From contig CDMY01000859.1 in assembly GCA_001179505.1 (NCBI GenBank), positions 124,001 through 188,000 of the forward strand: a stretch of 64,000 nucleotides of DNA, given 5' to 3'. Made by a program: the position numbers and the translations under genes. Numbering within the stretch: position 1 is the stretch's first letter; each line of letters starts with the position of its first letter. Below the pieces are notes generated by a model, which was given only the letters and a program-made list of their open reading frames with translations, was not told where the DNA came from and made no database searches. Source of the stretch: Vitrella brassicaformis CCMP3155. Lineage: Eukaryota; Protista; Chromerida. Positions 215-24,040 of this stretch are shown here, piece after piece.

Positions 215-967
215 ATGTCATTCAGCCTCTGGCTTGAGGTACCCAGCACGCCATGAGCTTTTCCTTCACTTATCATCTATCCAATTTGCGCCATCGTCTG
301 TCGATTGATTTTCTGACAGGCACCACAAAGCCCTTTTGGTGACGCCATTCAACGACATGCAGGCGAATTGGGCACGCCTGAGTTCTCACCCCACGTCACA
401 CTGGTCAGCGGGGGACCGTATGCGTCTATCTGCGATGAATTCCTCTCCCTGTGTGTCAGATCGGTGGCGTCAAGCATCTTTCGTTGGAGGCTTTGCAAGA
501 CAAGTGCATGCGGCTGGCGGCCTCGTCGCGGCGTGCGACGCTCACCGTGACCGATGTTGACTACGGCGAGATGTTCTTTCAGTGCATCTATGCCCTGATC
601 AACAAGACCCAAGAGCTGACCGCCTTGCATGAAAACGCCAAGAAGGTGAGATGGGAGGGGATGGACACGGCGAGCGAGGCACCGCCAACGAACCTGCCTG
701 TTCTCATCGATATGGATGGATGGACGGATGCAGCTCTTGTACACGGACGAGGGCGTGGACTTCAAAGGGCCGAATGATGAGTACATGCCTCACCTGTCGC
801 TGGTATACGGCGAGCTGTCGAAGGAGGTCAAGGGGGAGCTGAGCGCCATCCTGAGCGAGGAGGTGCGAGGGAGTGAGTTCACCGTTGGCGCGATAGCCCT
901 GTACGAGACGGGGCCTGACATTCAGGACTGGAAGTGTATCGCGAGATATCCTCTCTTGAGCCAGTGA
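215..967 (+). CDS. 2H phosphoesterase / 2',3'-cyclic nucleotide phosphodiesterase (CPDase-like), 4 exons
   Basis: Spliced product MSFSLWLE|APQSPFGDAIQRHAGELGTPEFSPHVTL|IGGVKHL...ENAKK|LLYTDEGVDFKGPNDEYMPHLSLVYGELS...WKCIARYPLLSQ*. It has both H-x-T/S motifs (PHVTL, PHLSL) of the 2H family. First intron is 239-319 (GT..AG). In-frame upstream exons may extend the N-terminus off-window. Confidence 0.85.
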
Positions 968-10260: not shown

Positions 10261-13200
10261 TCACCAATTCAGCTTGCCCCCACATGCCCCTTCCTGCTGC
10301 TGCTGGGTGCCGCACTTGCCGCCATCCTCGCCGAAGGTATCGAGGATCTTGGGCGACCCGCCGCCGCTCTGGGGATTGGACTCGCCACCCGTCACGCGCC
10401 ACCTGGACACACAGAAGTGGACAGCACACGTACGTGTGTTTGTTGTATGCTGGCTGACTGACGCACCTTGATGTAGCGAGCGCCTTGTCGAGCTCCTGTG
10501 TGGGCGGCAGGTGTAGCGACACACGACCACCCTGCACACAGGCACACAGACAGGTTCGCTGGTTGCATTGACGACCACATGCAGTGTATCTCTGTTCTCA
10601 CGTCGATCTTGACATCGAAGGCAGCGATTTTGTATGGGTCGCCGGAAAGGCACGCGCCCGTCTCGAGTGAGAAGGTCTTCTTGTGGAAGGGACACGCCAC
10701 CTTCGGCTCGCCCTGGTGCTCACCTTCACACAGACAGACAGACAGTGTCCGGCAGATGTGTTCAACGATTGCTTGCGCACCGATGAGTCCCCTGGAGAGC
10801 ACGAATGCGCGTTTGTGCGGGCACATATTCTGTGTGGCGAACCACCGGTCGCCCTCATCGCCCTTGCTGACCCGAAACACCGCCAGCTGCGTGTCGCCCA
10901 CCTTCACCGCAGCACCTGACACAGCCAGCCACCAATGTACACCAATCCGATGCGTGGGCGGTTGTGTGTGCTCATGCCGACCTCCATTGAGGGGGAAGTC
11001 GTCCACGGTGCCGACGTCGGTCCACTGCCACTGCTTGACGTCGGTCGAGGTGTCTTTGGATACCTCGGCCTCCCACGGGCCCGTCTCTGGCCATGGGACG
11101 GGGTAGCTCTGGCCGCGAACGGACTGATCGGACATGCCTGAAGATAGTGACAGCACACGTGTTCGCACGGAAGTCGGCTGTTTGTTTTGTGCTGACCTTG
11201 GTCCTTGTCTGTGGTGTTGGCGAACTGCGAGAAGCGGGCCCTGAGCTTGGGATTGTCGACCACCTCTTTCCACTCGCACTTGTACGTATCACTGCAATCA
11301 ATGCATGGAAGGCGTGATAGACAGACAAGTGGGTGGATGCTCTCGTCCACCCTATCTTCCGAGCTCACGTACATGACGTATTCCATGCGCTGTTCCAGCT
11401 CCTCGGCGAGCCCAAGTTTGTCGTCAATGACCACCTGCTTGAGGTGATCGAGGCCGCCCTCCAGATTCTCCAGCCACGGCGCCGTCCGCTGCAACGGGTC
11501 AGCCTGGCCAGCACCACACACAGAGGTAGAGGGATGAACGAGAGGTGGGTGGGTGTGGGCATCTATCTGCTGTACTGACCGACCGTGTAGATGTAGAACA
11601 TGAGAAAGCGGTCGAGGTACTTGATGGCCGTGGCCTCGTCCACATCACTCGCCAGGAGCTTCGCGTGGGCAGGACGGGCGCCGCCGTTGCCACATACGTA
11701 CAGATTGTACCTGCTCACACACACACACGGAGAGAGAGAGAGAGATGCACACACGAGAGATCGACAGTGTGGATGAAGGCACGCACCCTTTGTCAGTGGC
11801 GATGAGTCCGAAGTCCTTGCCCTGCGCCTCCGCACACTCCCTCACGCACCCACTCACGCCGCCCTTGAGCTTGTGTGGGGACCGCAGACCCTTGTACCGA
11901 TTCTCGAGCAAAATGGCCTTTAGCACACAGACGGAGAAAGGGTCCATGCCATCAATGCTGCTGATATGGGGTGCCCATCCATCCATGCCCCTCCCTCCCT
12001 CCCTCCCTTACCATTCCGACAGAGTCCTGCTGGCCATATCGGCACCAGGTCGACCCCACGCAGCTCTTGACCGTCCTCAGCGACTTGGCATATGCATGGC
12101 CGCTCTCGAACCCCGCATCCACGAGCTCCTCCCATATCTGCGGCAGGTCCTGCACCGCCGCCCCGAACAGGTCGATTCTCTGGCCACCGGTGATCTTGGT
12201 GTACAGGCCGTACTTGACGCCCACATCAGCAATGACACGGAGGCCCGCTGGCGTGATCTCTCCCCCCGGGATGCGTGGGATGACGCTGTAGGTGCCCGAC
12301 CGCTGGATGTTGGCCAGGAACCGGTCGTTGGTGTCCTGCAGAACGTCGCGGCTGCTCGCGAGGATGTGCTCGTTCCACAGCGATGCCAGGATGGAGGCAA
12401 TGGCTGGCTTGCACGTCTCGCAACCCTGGACATCGCAGCGATGGGATGACTTATGCGACTGATGTGTTGCTGTTTTCGCGTTTCACTCACCTTGGGGTCG
12501 CCTTTGCCGACGTGGTCGAAGATCTCCTTGTACGATTTGAGCCCCTTGATCTTAACGACGTCGAACAGCTGCTTCCTGGTCAGCGGGAAGTGAGAACAGA
12601 TGCCGCTGAACGCATCCTTACCTGACGGGTGGCACATGCACAGTAAAATCTTGACGCACGAATATCCTCTCTCCCTCGTCCACGCACCCATTTTCTTGAG
12701 GGCGTCGGCAAGGATCTTCTTTACGGGGCCGGTGACAATGCATCCGCCGCACCCCGTGCCGCACTTGGTGGTCTTCTTGAGCTGCTCCAGAGTGCTCACA
12801 CCCTTGTCCTTCACTGCCGAATCGATGTCGCCCTTGGTGATGCCGAAACAGGTGCACACCACATCAGCGTCGTCCAACCTGACACAGAGTGCAGAGAGTG
12901 CTCACCCACATCGTACTGACTGGTGTCCATTCGCCCTTCCCCATTGCACTCTCTCTCTCCCTCTCTCTCTCTCCCTGTGTGTGTGTGTGTCCGTTGGCCC
13001 ACCCGCCATCGGTCTTCTTCTCTCCCGCCCCTCCAAAGCCCATGAGCTCGGCTGGCGACTTGCCGTTGAGGTGACCCCTCTTGGCTGCCGACAGCAGCCG
13101 TGTGTAGTCGGACACATCGCCCACGAGCATGCCACCGAGCAGGAAATCTCCTGTCGGGTTGAAGACGAGCTTCTTGTAGTGCCCAAGGAAGGGATCCGCC

Positions 13201-14867
13201 TGCGTGAGGGAGACGGCCTGCCGCGAGAACAGACAGACGGGACAGCGAAGAGAGATACACATGGCCGATAGGGAGCCTTGTTGGTTGGTGTGTGTGTTGG
13301 CGTACCTTTGTGGCGTCATCAGTCTTGAACTGGTTCTTGAACCAGAAGTCATCTGAGTGGCCGAACGACGCCACGTCGACACCAAGCAGCTTGAGCTTAG
13401 TCGACAAATCAGACCCTGCACAAACCACAGAAGCAGTGTTGCAGCATATGTGATCGAGCCACTGCCGTCCTCTACCTGTGTAAGCGGCATCGGGGTTCAC
13501 GCCGGTCAGGTTCGACACGAGAACCTTGCTCATTTCCCAGCCTGGCGCGACCAAACCATACGTCATCTTGCCCCTGACACACAAAACAGACACACGAGGA
13601 GCGGTGTCATGCAACGCCGTAGAGACCCTGCTCTCTGCTGCGGCGAATACCTGTGTGATGCGACCTCTCCGATGGCATAGATGTCGGGGTCACTGGTCCG
13701 CATGTGGTCGTCCACCTTGATGCCGCCCTGCGCACCCAACTCGATACCACAGTTACGACCCAACTCGTCGCGCGGCCTGCAAGGGAACAGAAGATCGCTT
13801 GCATGGAAAGAAGGGCCTTTCTGTGAGGAGAGTGACAGACCTGATTCCCGCACAAACGACGAGCATGTCACACTCGAACTCCCACATCTCTCCAGAGGCC
13901 TTGTTCTTGAGCCTCAGGCCACGAAGACTGCCCCCGTCGTCAAGGAGAAGGTCCTGGGTGCGCCAGTTGAGCTCAACGTGGATGCCCAGCCCTACAGCAA
14001 CACGACGGACAGGGATGGACAGCACTTTCATCTCTGCTTGCCTTGCCTCCCTGCCCGTCTTACGTTTGATCATATCGACGAGCATCTTGCCTCCCGTGGC
14101 ATCGAGTTGCCTGGGCATGAGGTAGGGATTGTGTTCCATGACGTGGGTCTCCACCCGCATGTCATACAGCGCCTTGGCGGCCTCCAGTCCCAGCAGCCCC
14201 CCTCCGATGGCCGCCGCCCTGCGCACCCTCCCTGACTTGATGTACTCGACAATCGCCTCTGTATCGTCCAGCGTTCGGTAGACAAACAGACCCTTCGCAC
14301 ACCTGAACACACAAACAAGGGCAAGCAACACATGGGAGTGTGTGACATCCGAGGTGGTCTGGGCGTGCTCACTGGTCGAGGTTTCCGAGTGCAGGGACGA
14401 ACGCGTAAGATCCAGTGGCGAGAACGAGCTTGTCGTATGCGATATAGCGCCCGTCGCTGGTCTCGACGGTGTGGGCCTCACGGTTGACCTTGACGGCGCG
14501 GCAGCTGATGTGGAAGGCCACATTGTGCTCGCCGAACCAAGAAGAGCCGCAAAGGGACAGCTGATCTGGGTCGTGATGCTTGAAATATGACGTAAGCTGC
14601 ACGCCTACGCACACACACACACACACACACACACAGGCAGCACAGGGATTGTCTTGGTAGACCTATGATCTGCCCTGCCCTTGTCTGCTTACGATTGTAT
14701 GCGTGCCGTTTCTCTTCACAGATGGATGTCAGCTGAAACCTCTTCTCGCTGTCCAGCTCCAGCACATCCTCAAGGAACCTGTGGCCAACCGGCCCATTGC
14801 CAACTATCACAACCCGCACAGGCGGACTGAGAGATGATGAATCAGCAGAGGTGGCGTGAGGCGCCAT
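10261..14867 (-). CDS. nirB: NAD(P)H-dependent siroheme nitrite reductase, NirB fused to a C-terminal NirD Rieske domain (fungal NiiA-type architecture)
   Basis: VVIVGNGPVG and AAAIGGGLLGLEAA (FAD/NAD binding). BFD-like Cys clusters: VCTCFGITKG, CGTGCGGC, ICSHF...CETC. Also TNDRFLANIQRSGTYSVIPRIPGGEIT, TKITGGQRIDLFGA. Siroheme/4Fe-4S ligands CVGSTWC and GCVRECAEA. Rieske motifs NMCPHK and VACPFHKKTF. Ends CGGKLNW*. Confidence 0.95.
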
Positions 14868-15194
14868 TGATGGCAGATCTTGAGCAGATCTCTCGCCAAG
14901 AACAAGCTAAGTGAGCAGACGCAGGCACCGTCGGCTAGAAGCGCATGAGGCAGTCGCGACAAAAAGAAGCTCAAAGCTCAAAGTCGGCAGCAAATAGGCC
15001 GCGATCCGGCCAGGAGCGATGTTGGCCGGCCAGGGTGACAGAGTCATTTCGCATCGGTTTGCACCGCAAATTGCCTATCCCGATGGCAGACGCAACGCAG
15101 GACACTGACCGCATGTAGATTCGCTTCGTTTTTCGAGCGTGATGGTCTTCCTCTAGCTCGCGTTTCGTCGCGTGGCAAGAGAAGCAAAGCAGGG
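14868..15194. promoter_or_regulatory. Short divergent (bidirectional) intergenic region between nirB (-) and the NLR-like gene (+)
   Basis: Predicted ATGs at 14867 (-) and 15195 (+) are 327 bp apart, head-to-head. No specific motif was identified. Confidence 0.4.
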
Positions 15195-18100
15195 ATGTCC
15201 GTTTGCTCTGAATGGTCAGCAGCATTCGTAGTCATCGGTGGATGCCATTCATCTCATTTGTCTGTTTGATCAGGTCGTCCGAGGACACGGAAGAATGGCT
15301 GCGGTGGAATGGACTGTCAGTCGACTACGTTGCTGCATTCAGAGAGAACCACATACGCGGAGATATATTGGTACGCCTCGAAACAGCCAGACATGCACTC
15401 CCGAAGGCAGATCTATCTCTCGGCTGCTGTGGTCATGCCATAGATGGACCTGACAGCCGCCGACTTGACCGATATGGGACTGGAGGACCACCAGCAGTTC
15501 TTCGCTGCTCGAGCTGCACTCGACTCGTCATCGCCATCCCTCCCGCCTTCATGGCGCATCCGAGCCATCCAGAAGGGCGACGCAGCCACAACCATGCGCC
15601 GCGGCAGCAGAAGAGAAGGGGCCATGGATGTCGTCCTGACACGTTCGGCGCCTCTCATGATGCAGGACAGCGCCGCTGATCGGCATGCGGACCGCTCCAT
15701 CACCCTCATGCCCTGCACCTTAGCGGGTGCCATCCATCATGCGGAGGAGTCTGTGGTGCAGACACTGAGGGGCTCCACGCAGAGGGGCCTGCTGGCAATC
15801 AAGAGGGCTCTGGTATGCAGCGAGGGAGGGAGGGAGGCCAGGGAGATCGACACACTTGCGGTCTGCTATACGCAGGGCACTGTGGAGGATATCGGAACCG
15901 CTGTGGTGCGTGGGTGTCGAGTATGGCACCACACGGGGCCAGCATCGGAGGACGGCCACCTCATCCTGGAGGATCACTCAGGTCACACGATGCAACGCAT
16001 GCCGCCACTCATTGCTGTACTCGTGTGTCGCGGTTCTCGGACACAGGATCTGGCGTGCCTATTGCTCCGTCTTGCGTCGCCGAGCTGCTGCATCGCAGCC
16101 ACCAGCCTGCTGAAGACACGGCAGCATCGGTGTGGCGGTGCGACTGCGTTGTCCTCGTCACCTCAGATGCCCAGGACGCCGGCACCAAAATGTACGCCAA
16201 AGCCATTTAGCGACCAAGTGCATGAGGGGTCGAATATGTAAGGGGCGGTGTGTGTGAGTGTGTGCTTGGTGCAGCTTCGACGCGCTGGTGAGGTCAGATG
16301 CGTCAGTGAGTCCCCCAGGAGTGGTAGCCGTCGAGCTGGAGGGAGAGGATGGCAACGGCAGCGATGAGGCGCTGAGGGCACTTTACACAACTCTCATGGT
16401 GCGTACCCATAGGACACCTATACACACCATGAGCAATCGTGTGTGTCTTTGTGTGTCGGTTATTTGATCCATCCCAGGAAGGCGGCACAGTGGAGGAGGC
16501 GGCGGAATCTGCCCAAGACAAGGCCCCCCACGCCCAGATCTTCACCTTCAGTGCTGCCACCGACTTGGACGCTGACGACGACAGGGCACCGCTGCGGCCT
16601 CTGCTTGTCGACCGCAGGAGGCGGCCACCACAGCTCACCGACCGCATCAATGACACGTACGCAGGGACTGAAATACACTCACATCAGGTCACTCACATCT
16701 ATCGTTCCATGTGTGCATTGCATTAGGACGTCCCCCTACCCGCCCATCGACCTCCCTCCTCTGCCCCATGATGGCTACATGGGCAGCGAGAGAAACGTCT
16801 GGAACGTGCGTAAGAGAGAGAGGTCCACACAGGGCTTGGCTTGTATGTCCGCATGCGCCACCTAACGCTTCTATTCTTCCTCCAGGTGGTCAGGGCGCTG
16901 CGTCGTGTTCGGGCCGTCTGGCTGATGGGCGTCACTGGGGTGGGCAAATCCACCGTTGCGGCCGCTGCTGCACACTACGTCGGATGTCGGTCCCACTACG
17001 CTGATGGCGTGGCTTGGGTGGCCCTGGAAGGATGCCGGGACATGGAATGCGTCACATCCACTCTCGAGCGGGCACTCAAGGTCAGGGTGGTGGATGGTGA
17101 TGGTGTGGATGGCGGGGCGCACCATCCTGTGCCGCATGTCAATGGCCACCGGCTGCTGGTCTTCGACCAAGGTGACAACCGACCTGCCTGCATGTGACGA
17201 ATGCAGGCATCGACGTTGTGTGTGTGTTTTTTGCTGTCAGTCGACGCCCTTCTCTCCCACAGCGGCCCATCTCTGCTCGAATGGCTGTCAAGGCTCATCC
17301 GCACGGCGCCGAGGGTCACAATGATCATCACTGCTCGCCAGGCCATCCCCAGCCACCCATCCTTTGCAGAAGAGACGGAGACCATCGAAATCAGGGGGCT
17401 GTCGAGGACCATTTCTGTCCAGTTCTTGCTCAAGCAGGCCTCCTCCGCCAATCAGGAGATGGCTGAGCAGCTGGCTGGTGAGTGGGGCGGGCACTCAGGG
17501 GGGAGGGAGGGAAGCGATGACAGGTCCAAATTCTTCTCGTCTCTGTTTGTTTATGTGCTGGTGCAGATCTGTGTGGAGGGTTGCCGGCGGCGTTGCGGAT
17601 GGCTGGCAACAGGCTAGGTGAAGGACGTACTCGACGCAAATATGAACAATCCCAATTGCTCCATTTCTTTACTACCTCAGGCGACTTTCGTTCTTCATCC
17701 CTCGCCCCCGTCGCCCTCGCGCCTCCATCCCTCAACAATCACTGGGAGGGTGACCTGTTCGATCGGCTCCTCGGCCCGGCAGTGGACGGCCTCCCATCAG
17801 CGGCACATCGAGCCCTGCGACTTCTGTCGATGCTCCCCGGGCCCTTCTCACTCAATGCAGCGAGTGCCATGTTGGGCTCTCATCCGACGGCCGTTTCCCC
17901 GGTTCTCGCCACTCTGCAGCGAGCGCACCTGCTCACCCGCCACTGTCAGCTCTACACCCTACCGTCCATCGTGAGGCTGCAGCAGGCAGCGTCGCCTCCA
18001 TCCATCGACATCGATACGCGGCGGGGGATGGTGCGTCTCATCGGGTGGTATGCGGGGGTGCTTTTGGACGCCAGCGATCGGCTTGAGCGTGTGAAAGAGG

Positions 18101-20607
18101 GTGGCGGGATGGGTGGCATGACGGCTGACGGGGCTGTGCGGGGGTATGATGAGGAAAGGGTTTGTGTGGATGAGGTGGTGCGGTGGGCGGAGAGGATACA
18201 CCCGGCGGTCTTCCTGCTCATCGTACAGGTACCGCTAGCACACCGGTAGTGGACTCTGCTGTATCTAACGAATGTGTGTTGTGAGTCCCCCTCAGGCGGG
18301 GCGTCCTGTGTTCCTTCATCGTTCGTCCTCGGCTGCGTATGTGGCGCTGTCCGAGTCGGCCCTGACAGCCCTTGTCTCCTTGCAGCACCCCACCGCTTCC
18401 CCGCCCTCCAAGCCACAGCCAGCCCCTTTTATCCACAACAGGCCGATGGACAGGCAGGAGACGACAGACATGGACGGGTTCGTGCCTGTGCTGCTCGACT
18501 CGACGACCACAGCCATCCCCTCGTCACCCCCGTCCCCCTCACTCAACACTTCCCTCGTGTCGCCTGAGTACGATGCGCCGGTGTCGGCCGAGAGCATGGC
18601 GGTTGACCCAGAGGTGATCGCAGAGGAGATGCAGAGCCTGCACAAGATGGTGCAGCAGAGCGCCGCTGGGCTCGACAAGACGGGCGGGCCGTCAGCTACC
18701 ATGGTGCATTTGTCAGTCTTGTCGATGGTGCGCATGATCGAGAGGGCTATGGTGGGGGGAGGAGACAAGTGGGACAAGAACGGCCAGAGCATGCTGCCCC
18801 GGCCGCCGGTGGGTCCGAGACCTCATGTTGGAGGTCGCAAGTGGTGGACTGACCACCCAACAGACGTGCAGGTCAGTGCAACTTGATGGCGTCATCTCTG
18901 CATCGATGGATTCCTCTGTTGTTCCGTGCAGGCTGTGTGTGACATGCTGCTGGATGTTGCCGTTGCGTCGCGAGAGCTGGGTCGCTTCGTGCACGCCGAG
19001 CATCTGTTGATGCACGCCTCACGGCTGCTTGCCACCGTGGCCTTCGACCAGCAGAAGGCAGAACAGAGCGGCGCGTGTCTGCTCATCAGGGGCGAAATAA
19101 CCGCACAGATGGGCCGAGTCAAAGTGATGGAGGTCAGCACAGCACGACACATATCGACAGCTAGAGAGGCCGACAGTCATCTGTTGTCTGTCAGGGTGAC
19201 TCCTCAACTGCTGAGGGGCTCTTCCGGACCGCTGTGGACGTCTTCGCAAGTGGCGCTCCTGACTCCAAGGTGCTTGCCAACGCCATCATGAACCTCGCGA
19301 CGTTCTACACCGACGTACGTTCTGGCAGCCATGCCTGCCCCTCTCCTCATACCCGATGTTTGCGTGTCTGATCGAGTGCAGGTGCGTGTGGACTACCCTT
19401 CAGCAGAGCGTCTGTTCCGCCAGTGTCTGCGGATGCGTCTCCGCCACACGGGGCTTCAGCACCTCGACGCCGCCGCAGTTCTCTCCAATCTGGCCATCCT
19501 CTGCTGCAACACGGGCCGACTCAGAGAGGCGAAAGGGTGAGTGAGCCGGCCTGCAGCAAGCAAAACGTACCTCTCAGCGATTCTTGTCCTCATTGTTTTG
19601 CTTCAGGTATATCCTAGAGTCGGCATCGATCCGGGAGGCGCTTCTCGGCGAGGACGACCTGTTGGTTGCTGCATCCATTCACAACCTGGCGGCCATCTGC
19701 GAAGAGCTGGGCGAGCTCGAGAAGGCAGAGACCCTATACGAGTGAGTGAACTCCCACCGACACAATACCTGCGCACATATGACGACCCCGCCCTGTCTGC
19801 CTTCAGTCGGTGTCTGGCCATCCGCGCGCACCAGCTGCCCGAACACGACCACCGACTGGCCTTCACCCACACCAACATGTCCATACTCTACGCCAAAATG
19901 GGCCGAGGCGACGAGGCAATCGACGCGGCGCGGCAGGCCCTGACCATCGCAGAGGCCTCTCTTGGCCATGACCACCATAAGACGTGCTCTATCCGAGGCA
20001 ATTTGGCGGCTGCACTGGTTCAGAAAGATGAGCGAGATGGAGAGGGTGAGGGGTCTGGCGAGGCCGTGAGGCTTCTGGAGGAATGTTTGGCGTGCCATGA
20101 GAGGAGACAGCGCGGAGGCGATGGGTTGCGGCCTCAGTCGCTCATACCGATCGTCACCAACCTAGGAAAGGTCGTGACCCAGGGGTGAGTGGGTCAACAT
20201 TTTACTTCTTCTGTGTTGTTGTGCAGGCTCGCGAGCAACAAGGCGACTACAAGGGCGGGTACGAGGCCTACGAGTCGGCCTTGGGCATCTGCCGCACCCT
20301 CTACCCGGCGCAGCCCCACCCCCACACCTGCCGGTCTCTTTTCTTCATCGCGAGGTCGGCCTATCGCGCAATGGAGAATGAACAGCAACGCCACGACGCA
20401 TTAGCCGACACGCCACGAGAGCTCTGTGAGTGGCAAGATCCGCTTGCCCCGCGTGTGTTCCCGCCTTCACGAGAGGAGATTGTGGTGTTTGTGAGGGAGT
20501 GCGAGGGCCACCTGAAGGTTCTCGAGGAGAGGGGCGAGTGTGTTCTCGGAGAAGCGGATCGGAAAGTGCTGCACGAGATGAGACAGGGGCTCAGCCTGGC
20601 CTCGTGA
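15195..20607 (+). CDS. NLR-like STAND NTPase: SAM - degenerate CHAT - NB-ARC - winged helix - TPR repeats
   Basis: SAM: MSVCSEW|SSEDTEEWLRWNGLSVDYVAAFRENHIRGDIL|MDLTAADLTDMGL. CHAT-like: GCRVWHHTGPASEDGHLILEDHSG, CDCVVLVTSDA, PGVVAV...ALRALYTTLM|EGGTVEEA. NB-ARC: Walker A GVTGVGKS (16928-16951), Walker B LLVFDQVD, sensor-1 IITAR, LCGGLPAALRMAG. WHD: LRLLSMLPGPFSL...LTR..YTLPSIVR. Kinesin-light-chain-type TPRs: AAVLSNLA, AASIHNLA, AFTHTNMS, TCSIRGNLA. Confidence 0.85.
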
Positions 20608-20915
20608 GCTCATGTTAGTCTGTGTGGAGCTTTTATGAGTTGTCTTTGTACTTATGTGGATGGATGGTTGCTGCAAGATGGCAACGCATTCGATGCAATG
20701 CATGGGTGTGCACTTTTCTTCTCCTCTCCTCAGTCTGGGCGCCTGGCCTGTGAACTGTTCATGGTGCTCGACCATGGCACAAGCCACATGGTCACGCAAC
20801 ATCGACGATACACGGCCACAAGGCACCAGTCAACGCGATGGTGAGACGCTGGCCGCTGCCCTGGCCAATCGCTAGTAGGATCGCCGAATCGCGGCTCCCC
20901 TGACAGGACAGAAAG

Positions 20916-23900
20916 ATGGCCAAGAGCAATGCCAGGAGCTCGTCGTCAAGCGACAGGAGGCCGAACCCCACAAGAAAACACCCCCCCTCAACCTCTTCCA
21001 AGGCTCCCCCTGTTGAGGCTCTCACAACTGAGGGGATGAAACTGGGGGTTGACGTCGAGAAGGAGGCGTGGAGATACCTCTGCCGATGGTACAAGAGCGG
21101 TCTGGACAAGACAGTCAAGGAAATCATCAGAGCCCAGAGCTCAGGCAGCAGCCATCAGCTGGTCCAGCGATATATACGCTTCCTGCTGGCGAGAGGCGGT
21201 GGGGCTTCATTCACCCCTCCCAGGGACGTGTGGCTGGTGTGGCAGAGCCACATGTTGCGGCCTGGCAAGTACGCCTATCATTGCTTGAAGCTGACGGGCA
21301 AGGTGATCTCACACGCGTTCGAACACGATTTGCCTGGGGGAGGGGAGGGGGACGATGACGACGCCAACCGGAAGCTCGACAATGCCGGCAAGCAGACAAA
21401 AGGACGTAGCGACGCTTTTGCTGCGACTTCAAGTTTCTCTGTCATTTTGCGCCTGCAGAGTGCCGCAGTATCGCGGAAGGACTGCAGAAAGTCATCACAG
21501 ATGAGGTGGGACGTACGGATCAGTACACAGCTCACCAATGTTCTCTCTCTCTACTCTGCAGCTCATGGGCATTCTGGCCACCGAAGCCCTCGCCAAGGAC
21601 TGGGCCTTCTTTGACGACCTTCTCACGAACTTCGATAAGTGTGGCATCACCAACATAAGAGGACACGTGACCAGCGATGTGGCGAAGGACTGCCCGGACA
21701 TCGGTTGGCTGATGGAGGGGCTGCATGAGCTGTATCTCAAGTATCTGCAGCTGACCCACAAGTGAGCACAGGAGGGCAGGCAGGGCCACTTTCAGGAATG
21801 GATTCACTTTCGCCGGCCTGTTTGTGCCACAGGTATGGTTCGGACGTGACGCCAACGCTAGAAATTGACTGGCTGTGGCACACACACTTGCTGCACCCGA
21901 CAAGCTACGCCGATGATTGCCAGAAAATGTTCAAAACAAACATAGGTGTGCGAGACACGGCCATTCCTGTCATGTGTGCACTATGCTATTGGGATGTCTG
22001 TCTGCAGGTCATCGCCCCTTCACTGCTGACGACGCCGGTTCCATCCCCGCCAAGCACGCCCTCTCGACCTCTCTCTGGACCAAGCACTGCGGCAACTCTC
22101 CCGCCGAGCTCATCACCCAGCTCATCCGCAAGCACAACAAACGAGAGACCGCAGTGCCAAAGAGAGACGAGGTGGCCCAGCTGGACGCCATGGGCTTCCA
22201 TGACCGAGGCACAAGCCTCCAGGCCCTCGAAGCTACTGATTTTGACGTCAATGGTGCCGCAAATCTGCTGATCGAGTGGCAGAAGGAAGGCCGTACGCCG
22301 CCGACAAGACGAGGCAAGGCAAAGGGGGCATTGAGGGGAACATCGACTGGGAGTGGACACAAGGGAGCCGGTGGGAGTGTCAAGGCGCCTCCGATTGGTG
22401 AGGTGGGTGTCACTCGAAGCGAATACGAGAGACGTCGCGACTACGTGGACTGGGTCGCTGCGCATTCATCGCCCGTACTCGAAATGACGGTGAGACATTG
22501 GCCAAGGCCCCCTGTGCACCTGGCACACCCGCTTCTTTCTGCCCGTTGTTCAGACGTTCCTCAAGTGTCAGAAGTCTGCGGCCAGAATGCTGAATGAGGG
22601 CAGTGGCGAGCCTGTCCAGGGTCTAATGTCGTTGCCTGTGGATGTCATGGTGCGCATTTGGGACTACGTAGCCGAGCCGTCAGCGACCTGCGAAGCTCTC
22701 GGGTGCAAAGTTACGACAAGACAGCGGACGAGGTGAGATGGGTCAGAGCTGCCCGAGATCTAATGTCCGCCTCGTCTACAGAGGGCCTGATGGTTTGATA
22801 ACCAAGACCCCCCGGTGCGGCTGCAGTCGCTGCAAACGACCGTGCGGTCTCTGCGGGGTCGGTTGTATGGGAAGGAGTGTACACACAGTGAAATGTTCCC
22901 TTGTGTCCCATTCAGTATCGTACTCTCCGTCGAGACGAATGGCAAGTTGGCGGCACTATTGCCTACTGCGGCTGTGAGTGTCCTGAATGCCGCCAGCTGC
23001 TGGTGCGAGAGGAGATACCAGGGGGGTTGGCGCTCGCTTGCGGCTGTGAGGGCAGCGTGTGTCAGTGCGGCAGGAAGGTCGACAGACAGAGACGGGAGAT
23101 GCCTGGCCCTGACCATCGCGGCAAACTCATGTGGTGAGTGGTCTCCAGGAGACAGACAGAAGAAATGAGGGGGCTTCTGTATGATAATCTTTTGCGCGTG
23201 TTCTCAGGTGGTGCGGCACATGTGGTTGTGCCAAGTGCGGGAAGCTGCCTTCTACATGCAAGTGCGACGAGGACCGCTGCTGTCGCTGTTGCAGCTGCTT
23301 TCTACCAAAGGCAGTGGTCACTAAGCTCCAGAAGATGCACACGCAACCAAACACCTCCTCGTTCATCTGCAGGTCCGCACTCAGGACGGCCTCCGAATTC
23401 CTTTCTCGTCATTGAAGGAGGGAGAATTCATCGCCACAGGGCAGAGTCCATCGTCGCCTCCCATCAGCGGCTCGTTCGGCTGTCAAGCGGCCTACCGTCG
23501 TGTCACCAAGGTGTGGAAATGCCCGGTGCCTGGAGGACGCGTGGACAGCTACTGGAGGGGGCCGAGTGGTGGAGGTGTGACCACCGGGCACCCCGTATGG
23601 GACCAAGAGCAATGGCGTCGACCTGAAGAGGTGCATGAGACCAAAGCCACACATGTGTGTGTGTGTGCGCATGGTTGTCCATGTCTCTGTCTCTCTTTGA
23701 CTGCATGCAGTTGGTGGCCGACGGTCTTTGGCGGGTGGAGACACAGCCAGTGGATTTCGTCTACACGATCGAGTTGGAGGGCCATGAAGACACCGTTGAA
23801 GTGGGCGGGGTGGTGTGTGCTGCCCTGGGAGCCTACTGCGGGCCTTCATTCGGCTGGAACATCTTCACGCGCAAGACGCAGCGCTGCGACAAAAGCGACT

Positions 23901-24040
23901 GTCTCCTGTGTGACCAAGTCGTGCTGCTGAAACAAGCGAGTGTGGACTTCGCCCACATCGGTGAGGATGCCCTTGCCGTGAGATACCCCCCGGTTGTCAT
24001 GAAGGTCGGCAGGCGGCAGTGTTCGTGGATGGCAAAGTGA
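20916..24040 (+). CDS. Multidomain protein: 2x DUF1399 (GRDP-like) - UBA - F-box-like helix - Cys-rich region - C-terminal Hint (Vint-type) domain
   Basis: DUF1399 repeats PPRDVWLVWQSHMLRPGKY and PTLEIDWLWHTHLLHPTSY. UBA: EVAQLDAMGFHDRGTSLQALEATDFDVNGAANLL. Intron 22490-22553 joins in frame to LMSLPVDVMVRIWDYV. Introns 22733-22781, 22858-22915, 23134-23207 and ~23317-23372 keep frame through a Cys-rich block into SCFLPKAVVRTQDGLRIPFSSLKEGEFIAT...VTTGHPVW...W..P...VYTIELEGH...GGVVCAALG. Confidence 0.8.

Follow-up and report, generated by a model that had tools for sequence, protein, structure and literature searches.

We describe here a gene on a 64,000-nucleotide stretch of the genome of the chromerid alga Vitrella brassicaformis CCMP3155 (assembly GCA_001179505.1, contig CDMY01000859.1, positions 124,001 to 188,000 of the forward strand; below, the window, to which all coordinates refer). 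The locus at 15195-20607 on the plus strand is a genuine expressed gene, read out as one transcript that encodes a 1,390-residue STAND (NLR-like) protein. The order SAM, CHAT-like, NB-ARC, and TPR, which an earlier note had proposed from the sequence alone, is found within this one transcript, with the SAM domain probable and below the Pfam cutoff. The Walker A Lys, the Walker B Asp, the sensor-1 Arg, and the GLPL motif are kept, and the His and Cys of the CHAT domain and the His and Asp of the MHD motif are lost. On balance, we lean toward a non-catalytic SAM-CHAT-NB-ARC-TPR STAND protein in which a nucleotide-binding switch acts as a sensor, scaffold, or regulator.

Transcript structure of the locus

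Public transcript contigs were aligned to positions 15000-20900 of the window (5,901 letters). Spliced contigs with 100% identity to the window were present in runs X5, X7, and X1, which represent three studies; run X6 contributed unspliced contigs colinear with the same region. A total of 15 intron joints were read directly from the X5, X7, and X1 contigs, each resolvable to GT..AG, and two further introns (15371-15443 and 19133-19194) were recovered by arithmetic on the contig records. The first intron (15215-15273, 59 nucleotides [nt]) was recovered from the depth along a single X5 contig, whose first two bins (47/63 and 36.4/63 of 197 nt) give 147 + 114 = 261 nt upstream of 15443; we place the intron at these coordinates because a 59-nt GT..AG there alone fits that length. 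A start at ATG 15212 (1,404 residues) was discarded, as the X5 depth needs the extra 59-nt intron and only the model starting at 15195 comes to 4,550 nt.

The resulting messenger RNA (mRNA) model, 15050-20839 minus 18 introns, has a length of 4,550 nt, exactly that of the X5 contig. All 18 introns are GT..AG and short (56 to 89 nt), and the window has a GC content of ~58%. Once spliced, the model is a single open reading frame (ORF) of 19 exons without an internal stop, from ATG 15195 to TGA 20605-20607. The earlier note had spliced the gene by hand. Both ends of its interval proved exact, with ATG 15195 becoming the start once intron 15215-15273 is removed and TGA 20605-20607 being the stop; the exons, checked against transcripts as an 18-intron model, match the 4,550-nt contig, and the locus is not divided into separate genes, as this single spliced contig spans all of it. 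The motifs quoted in that note are all present in the spliced protein (GVTGVGKS at residues 388-395, LLVFDQ(VD) at 463-470, IITAR at 497-501, and GGLPAAL at 551-557). Before splicing, SAM-like, P-loop, GLPL, winged-helix-like, and TPR pieces follow one another along the plus-strand ORFs from the six-frame translation of 15195-20607. Two short upstream ORFs precede the main ATG 15195 in the 5' untranslated region, at ATG ~15084 (11 codons) and ATG ~15142 (4 codons).

15050..20839, plus strand: mRNA, from the X5 transcript contig
15050..15194, plus strand: 5' untranslated region, its 5' boundary being the contig end, not a mapped transcription start
15195..20607, plus strand: coding sequence, 1,390 codons plus stop, in 19 exons
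15195-15214, 15274-15370, 15444-15812, 15876-15981, 16047-16191, 16275-16398, 16478-16656, plus strand: coding exons 1 to 7 of the spliced model
16727-16805, 16886-17171, 17241-17477, 17567-17617, 17681-18228, 18296-18871, plus strand: coding exons 8 to 13 of the spliced model
18932-19132, 19195-19314, 19382-19536, 19607-19741, 19807-20170, 20227-20607, plus strand: coding exons 14 to 19 of the spliced model
15215-15273, 15371-15443, 15813-15875, 15982-16046, 16192-16274, 16399-16477, plus strand: introns 1 to 6, from transcript contigs
16657-16726, 16806-16885, 17172-17240, 17478-17566, 17618-17680, 18229-18295, plus strand: introns 7 to 12, from transcript contigs
18872-18931, 19133-19194, 19315-19381, 19537-19606, 19742-19806, 20171-20226, plus strand: introns 13 to 18, from transcript contigs

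The NB-ARC nucleotide switch

The NTPase of the protein is a STAND NTPase of the NB-ARC (AP-ATPase) type, because the sequence profile A3, the matches of this profile in the PDB, and structural matches found with VIA-align all agree. The A3 profile was built from an alignment of the NB-ARC and winged-helix modules of ten relatives (AfsR-type). It matched the spliced protein with 81.9 bits over residues 363-700 (338 residues; E of 2e-27 for one target), compared with at most 6.9 bits in 2,000 shuffles. Searched against the PDB, it retrieved AfsR (2e-108), Roq1 (1e-14), Apaf-1 (6e-11), and many plant NLRs. Consistent with this, the spliced protein matched bacterial NB-ARC-TPR proteins by blastp at 1e-11 to 5e-14, continuously across four exons and with 26-34% identity over up to 375 residues. 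No match to the first hits was obtained with phmmer at default filters, whereas blastp and the profile searches did match them. An earlier query with alignment A1 returned actinobacterial proteins only; MAFFT had misplaced several exon fragments in alignments A1 and A2. Single exons scored below the Pfam thresholds (NB-ARC PF00931, 20.0 bits on exon 9, cutoff 23.5; NACHT, 19.6 bits on exon 10, also subthreshold).

16773..18087, plus strand: NB-ARC and ARC/winged helix, residues 363-700, exons 8 to 12 (A3 profile)
16928..16951, plus strand: Walker A GVTGVGKS with Lys394, aligned to GTAGVGKT of the relatives
17153..17170, plus strand: Walker B LLVFDQ with Asp467 and Gln468, spanning the exon 9/10 junction with the following VD
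17336..17338, plus strand: sensor-1 Arg501 in IITAR, aligned to the invariant Arg of VLVTSR
17575..17595, plus strand: GLPL-type motif GGLPAAL (motif and profile alignment)
17959..17967, plus strand: Leu658-Pro659-Ser660 at the MHD position, where relatives have x-His-Asp

The winged helix is supported both by the profile alignment and by the predicted structure of exon 12. An AlphaFold model of this exon, built with a 46-row alignment, had a pLDDT of 83 and shows three helices and a beta hairpin followed by long helices. In an exhaustive VIA-align search with the model, the ten best matches were all STAND proteins (Z of 10 to 11.4), headed by Apaf-1 (Z of 11.4, 145 residues aligned), the wheat G10 resistosome (11.2), and CED-4 (11.1), with PH0952, ADR1, MalT, NRC1, WRR4A, and Dark among the others. 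The regions matched were the WHD/HD2 of Apaf-1, CED-4, plant NLRs, MalT, and PH0952, and generic winged-helix regulators scored lower (Z ≤9.3). Foldseek returned only weak rows for the same model (E of 0.02 or worse). When the exon 12 sequence was searched against 1.8 billion representatives, nine weak matches were found, eight of them bacterial NB-ARC-TPR proteins that it matched exactly downstream of their NB-ARC domain; the algal protein was not among the nine. The top-scoring match of exon 12, P0001, is a 1,515-residue protein with ~21 tandem 72-residue repeats and a weak DUF4082 match, each repeat matching residues 641-674 of the algal winged helix at 41% identity over this short stretch only; it is probably unrelated, the match being due to chance or low complexity.

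Residue by residue, the algal switch follows its relatives at most of the diagnostic positions. In Walker B, the Mg-binding Asp467 is kept and the second position is Gln468, at the place of a D133-N134 pair that is invariant in A3 (10/10). A non-acidic second position appears to be the norm of the subfamily, because the ten closest relatives all carry Asn there. The GLPL motif of the helical ARC1 region reads CGGLPAALRMAG in the algal protein and is aligned to CGRLPLALRIAA, and the LPGP motif of the winged helix is also present in the alignment to the A3 relatives. The MHD latch is absent, with L-P-S where 10/10 A3 relatives carry x-H-D (H329 and D330 invariant). The earlier note had called this a complete STAND switch, a description that holds for Walker A, the Walker B Asp, sensor-1, GLPL, and the winged helix and fails at the MHD position. 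Its assignment of the NTPase stands, in that the A3 profile reached 81.9 bits and STAND proteins topped the VIA-align search, with no assignment to a non-STAND family. Without the MHD latch, the switch may be regulated differently.

N-terminal heads and C-terminal repeats

The CHAT-like region was examined with a hidden Markov model (HMM) that we built for this family, PF12770 in Pfam. A TPR query against plasmids led to a CHAT-TIR gene on Acaryochloris plasmid pREB8, whose CHAT part retrieved 3,544 relatives; tblastn with the pREB8 CHAT domain gave 92 plasmid records from five phyla, of which 18 were fetched. The CHAT HMM was made from 24 domains labelled CHAT by Pfam or NCBI, with identities down to ~25% and a length of 178 positions. 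It matched residues 86-316 of the spliced protein with 17.2 bits, colinear over HMM positions 50-168 of 178. In comparison, the maximum was 7.5 bits among 5,000 shuffles, 7.1 bits among 126 unrelated bacterial NB-ARC-TPR proteins, and 3.1 bits among 670 six-frame pieces of the window. With its introns left in, the ORF at 15444 scored 3.0 bits, and therefore splicing restores the CHAT match. This ORF (15444-16241) runs through introns 15813-15875 and 15982-16046, and its Cys-containing stretch is intronic. A narrower CHAT HMM, based on 120 cyanobacterial domains that are nearly identical, scored 4.8 bits (rank 2 of 2,001), and hhalign against this narrower set (P = 0.019) placed the motifs in the same register, with no Cys left. 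We regard the domain as real but divergent, and its homology to CHAT as supported by these sequence comparisons, because 17.2 bits is well above shuffles and controls and hhalign finds the same register. Searches of Pfam, the PDB, and the Atlas with single exons of the region returned no match, nor did a search of a large protein library with the N-terminal read-through piece. A weak blastp match of residues 75-135 to TIR domains (E of 0.04 against a database of 120 sequences) was put down to chance.

15621..16516, plus strand: CHAT-like (caspase-like) domain, residues ~99-300, exons 3 to 7 (home-made CHAT HMM)
15939..15941, plus strand: Pro184 at the catalytic His position (family HFsGHG, here WHHTGP; His in 24/24 references)
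16163..16165, plus strand: Ser237 at the catalytic Cys position (family vvLNaC, here VVLVTS; Cys in 24/24 references)

As a cysteine protease, the algal copy is predicted to be dead, because the invariant His and Cys are replaced by Pro184 and Ser237. Of the CHAT-like domain proposed in the earlier note, then, the homology is borne out and both catalytic residues are absent.

Upstream of this domain, a SAM domain is probable. A 32-residue piece of exon 2 matched positions 5-36 of the 66 in Pfam SAM_2 (E of 0.0015, 19.1 bits, cutoff 20.5) and, in the correct register, also SAM_1 and SAM_3; the second half of the domain alone had no Pfam match. The N-terminal SAM of the earlier note thus stands as probable from a half-domain match that did not reach the threshold. 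Its placing at the effector position can be kept as well, together with a dead CHAT domain and not on its own, and the signaling by SAM polymerization that the note suggested would be hypothetical.

15275..15539, plus strand: probable SAM domain, residues ~8-71, split by intron 2 (Pfam SAM profiles on the exon 2 piece)

The repeats behind the switch are well defined. Pfam TPR_12 scored 58.8 bits on exon 18 and 31.2 bits on exon 17 (cutoff 30.1), and TPR_10 scored 42.6 bits, likewise above its cutoff, in agreement with the several kinesin-light-chain (KLC)-type TPRs that had been proposed downstream of the switch. With a 42-residue unit HMM built from a cyanobacterial NB-ARC-TPR_12 protein, four in-register units were found, starting at residues 1036, 1078, 1119, and 1166, along with a weak fifth. 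By eye, two degenerate units precede and two follow the canonical four, for a total of ~8 KLC-type TPRs. Atlas features of the last exon weakly resemble TPR_12.

18296..18871, plus strand: exon 13, Pro/Ser-rich linker, residues 748-939, with no Pfam match and no usable Atlas match
18932..20334, plus strand: TPR region, residues 940-1300 (Pfam and unit HMM)
19276-19984, plus strand: four canonical 42-residue TPR units, residues 1034-1202, with degenerate units on both flanks (unit HMM)
20335..20604, plus strand: C-terminal tail, residues 1301-1390, with no Pfam match

Proposed role and relatives of the protein

In the non-catalytic switch that we favor, nucleotide binding would be retained, and the TPR/arm region would hold the switch off until something binds; the NOD would then oligomerize once this region is engaged. 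The algal protein itself would cleave no substrate. Because proteolysis would be impossible without the dyad, its output more likely consists in bringing the SAM and pseudo-CHAT heads close to one another, by SAM-SAM and/or CHAT-CHAT contacts. These heads could recruit or restrain catalytically competent paralogues, by analogy with the cooperation of sensor and helper NLRs or of the pseudo-caspase cFLIP and caspase-8. A role as a protease-armed receptor is unlikely because the dyad appears to be lost, and an immune or cell-death role is one that we only infer. cFLIP is a pseudo-protease that regulates active caspase-8, and assembly is SAM mediated in SARM1 and SAMD9/9L. The likeness to cFLIP lies in a caspase-fold domain without its nucleophile in a family with active members, and would be an analogy with no homology beyond the fold. 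The likeness to SARM1 and SAMD9/9L, an N-terminal SAM on an immune NTPase or NADase, would likewise be one of analogy.

Several observations weigh against this reading. The CHAT homology comes from a home-made profile at a modest score, and Pfam had no match on the single exons of the region. The assignment of the dyad residues depends on the CHAT HMM alignment, with His180 and His181 lying three or four residues upstream of the His position. The SAM score is below the Pfam cutoff, and the search of 1.8 billion representatives with exon 12 found no close paralogue. In addition, four otherwise invariant residues (the CHAT His and Cys and the MHD His and Asp) are gone together. This joint loss and the absence of a close relative of exon 12 from the representatives are also what would be expected of the main rival, a transcribed but decaying copy that is drifting toward a pseudogene without a function of its own. 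We consider such decay unlikely. The 1,390-codon ORF is unbroken over 19 exons and 18 canonical introns, spliced mRNA with steady expression is found in three studies, and the protein has kept Walker A, the Walker B Asp, the sensor-1 Arg, GLPL, and the core of the winged helix.

A STAND switch could also serve in a non-immune role, as a regulator or scaffold like AfsR/MalT or the nephrocystin-3-like TPR scaffolds, which we think quite doubtful here. The closest sequence relatives of the NOD are indeed actinobacterial AfsR/SARP and HTH-NB-ARC-TPR regulators, and there are weak partial matches to TPR_NPHP3 and NPHP3_N. However, NPHP3_N reached an E of only 0.1, against 81.9 bits for the NB-ARC-type profile, and at the N terminus lie a probable SAM and a CHAT-like domain, both typical of effectors in death or immunity. 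No Pfam match to Trans_reg_C/BTAD or HTH, the DNA-binding domains present in the bacterial relatives, was found on any single algal exon, and an AfsR-type DNA-binding role is unlikely because this head is absent. An active protease-armed receptor, with catalytic residues misplaced by the alignment or a Ser-His pair in use, is very improbable: His180, His181, and His190 lie close to the His motif, Ser237 takes the very place of the nucleophile, and the alignment score is modest, but neither motif needs a gap in its alignment to the consensus, Pro and Ser occupy the two invariant columns, the independent hhalign alignment gives the same register with no Cys, and there is no Cys at the end of the corresponding strand.

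The AfsR/SARP and HTH-NB-ARC-TPR proteins of Actinomycetota (AfsR PDB 8K60 and 8JKE) are the closest sequence relatives of the algal NB-ARC, winged helix, and arm, and share with it, besides the 26-34% identity over up to 375 residues, Walker B D-N/Q, GLPLAL, and LPGP. They differ in carrying BTAD/HTH heads and an HD latch, where the algal protein has SAM and CHAT-like heads and L-P-S. Transitive profile matches place the NB-ARC of Apaf-1, CED-4, and plant NLRs in the same STAND clade, and these proteins gave the best matches to the predicted exon 12 structure (Z of 10 to 11.4); in contrast, they have WD40 or LRR sensors, CARD, CC, or TIR heads, and a conserved MHD/LHD.

In cyanobacteria and other multicellular bacteria, STAND proteins commonly bear a CHAT or metacaspase head, and such heads also occur in fungal NLRs, some of which adjoin gasdermin genes (bioRxiv 10.1101/2020.01.06.895854; PMC4986451; PMC12881547). 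SAM has been reported as a head of fungal NLRs (PMC9815663) and occurs in immune proteins (PMC9815663, PMC8795524). The all-in-one CHAT-NOD-repeat proteins of bacteria and fungi have the same order as the algal protein, with a CHAT head, a STAND NOD, and TPR-type repeats (bioRxiv 10.1101/2020.01.06.895854; PMC12881547; PMC9815663). Compared with them, the algal gene adds a probable SAM before the CHAT domain, a lost dyad, 18 spliceosomal introns, and an alveolate host. The algal TPR units are divergent from one another, unlike the near-identical repeats of hypervariable fungal NLRs. No gasdermin-like neighbor of the algal gene was found within the 64-kb window.

The module order CHAT, NB-ARC, and KLC-type TPR_12 is also shared with a gene pair of Acaryochloris marina pREB8 (CHAT-TIR followed by NB-ARC-TPR_12), in which, however, the modules are divided between two genes and the CHAT domain is intact and fused to TIR. 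By blastp, the pREB8 NOD had no match to the algal NOD at an E of 1e-3 or better. The pREB8 plasmid (NC_009933.1) carries three conflict-type genes at 12887-20165, encoding NB-ARC-WD40 (1,293 residues), CHAT-TIR (365 residues), and NB-ARC-TPR_12 (671 residues); in the CHAT-TIR protein, CHAT matches profile positions 105-255 only. At 18046-20225 of plasmid p057_C from Nostoc sp. C057, separate back-to-back genes for NB-ARC (with DUF7779) and TPR look like one NB-ARC-TPR protein that has been split or frameshifted.

Two neighbors flank the algal gene in the window.

13753-14867, minus strand: divergent, intron-containing gene for a pyridine nucleotide-disulfide oxidoreductase (Pyr_redox_2, E of 4.7e-11)
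20916-24040, plus strand: downstream gene, beginning 309 bp past the NLR-like stop codon, its first ORF with no Pfam match

The 5' end of the NLR-like mRNA (15050) and the first coding ORF of the oxidoreductase gene (starting at 14867) are ~180 bp apart, and the two genes probably share a bidirectional promoter because so short a distance separates their divergent starts. No paralogue of the NLR-like gene is present elsewhere in the window. The only other similarity, a weak TPR-like tblastn match of 499-684 (minus strand) to residues 1144-1214 (E of 0.21), probably reflects chance or a TPR gene not related to this one.

The full-text literature searched contained no account of genes of the NB-ARC, CHAT, or NLR-like kind in either Chromera or Vitrella, and the chromerid genome paper does not mention NB-ARC. 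The CHAT-NOD-TPR design is already known in bacteria and fungi, and what is undescribed in the literature searched is its presence in chromerids. For the alveolates related to apicomplexan parasites and dinoflagellates there is, to our knowledge, hardly any description of innate immunity or of regulated cell death. A far-reaching and highly speculative extension is that chromerids have an NLR system, bacterial in ancestry, that works in pairs or networks. Dead copies would be its sensors or brakes and would assemble, by way of their SAM and pseudo-protease surfaces, with protease-competent paralogues executing a caspase-like death or defense response. If true, alveolates would have in this network their equivalent of sensor/helper NLR pairs and of cFLIP/caspase-8.

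The expressed NLR-like gene with its caspase-like head indicates that the chromerid lineage, too, has the all-in-one STAND design known from bacteria and fungi. This copy, with a predicted dead dyad and no latch, poses the testable question of whether it is a regulator or a relic. Because the nucleotide switch has its closest relatives among bacteria, phylogeny can address whether the family arose by horizontal transfer or ancient inheritance.

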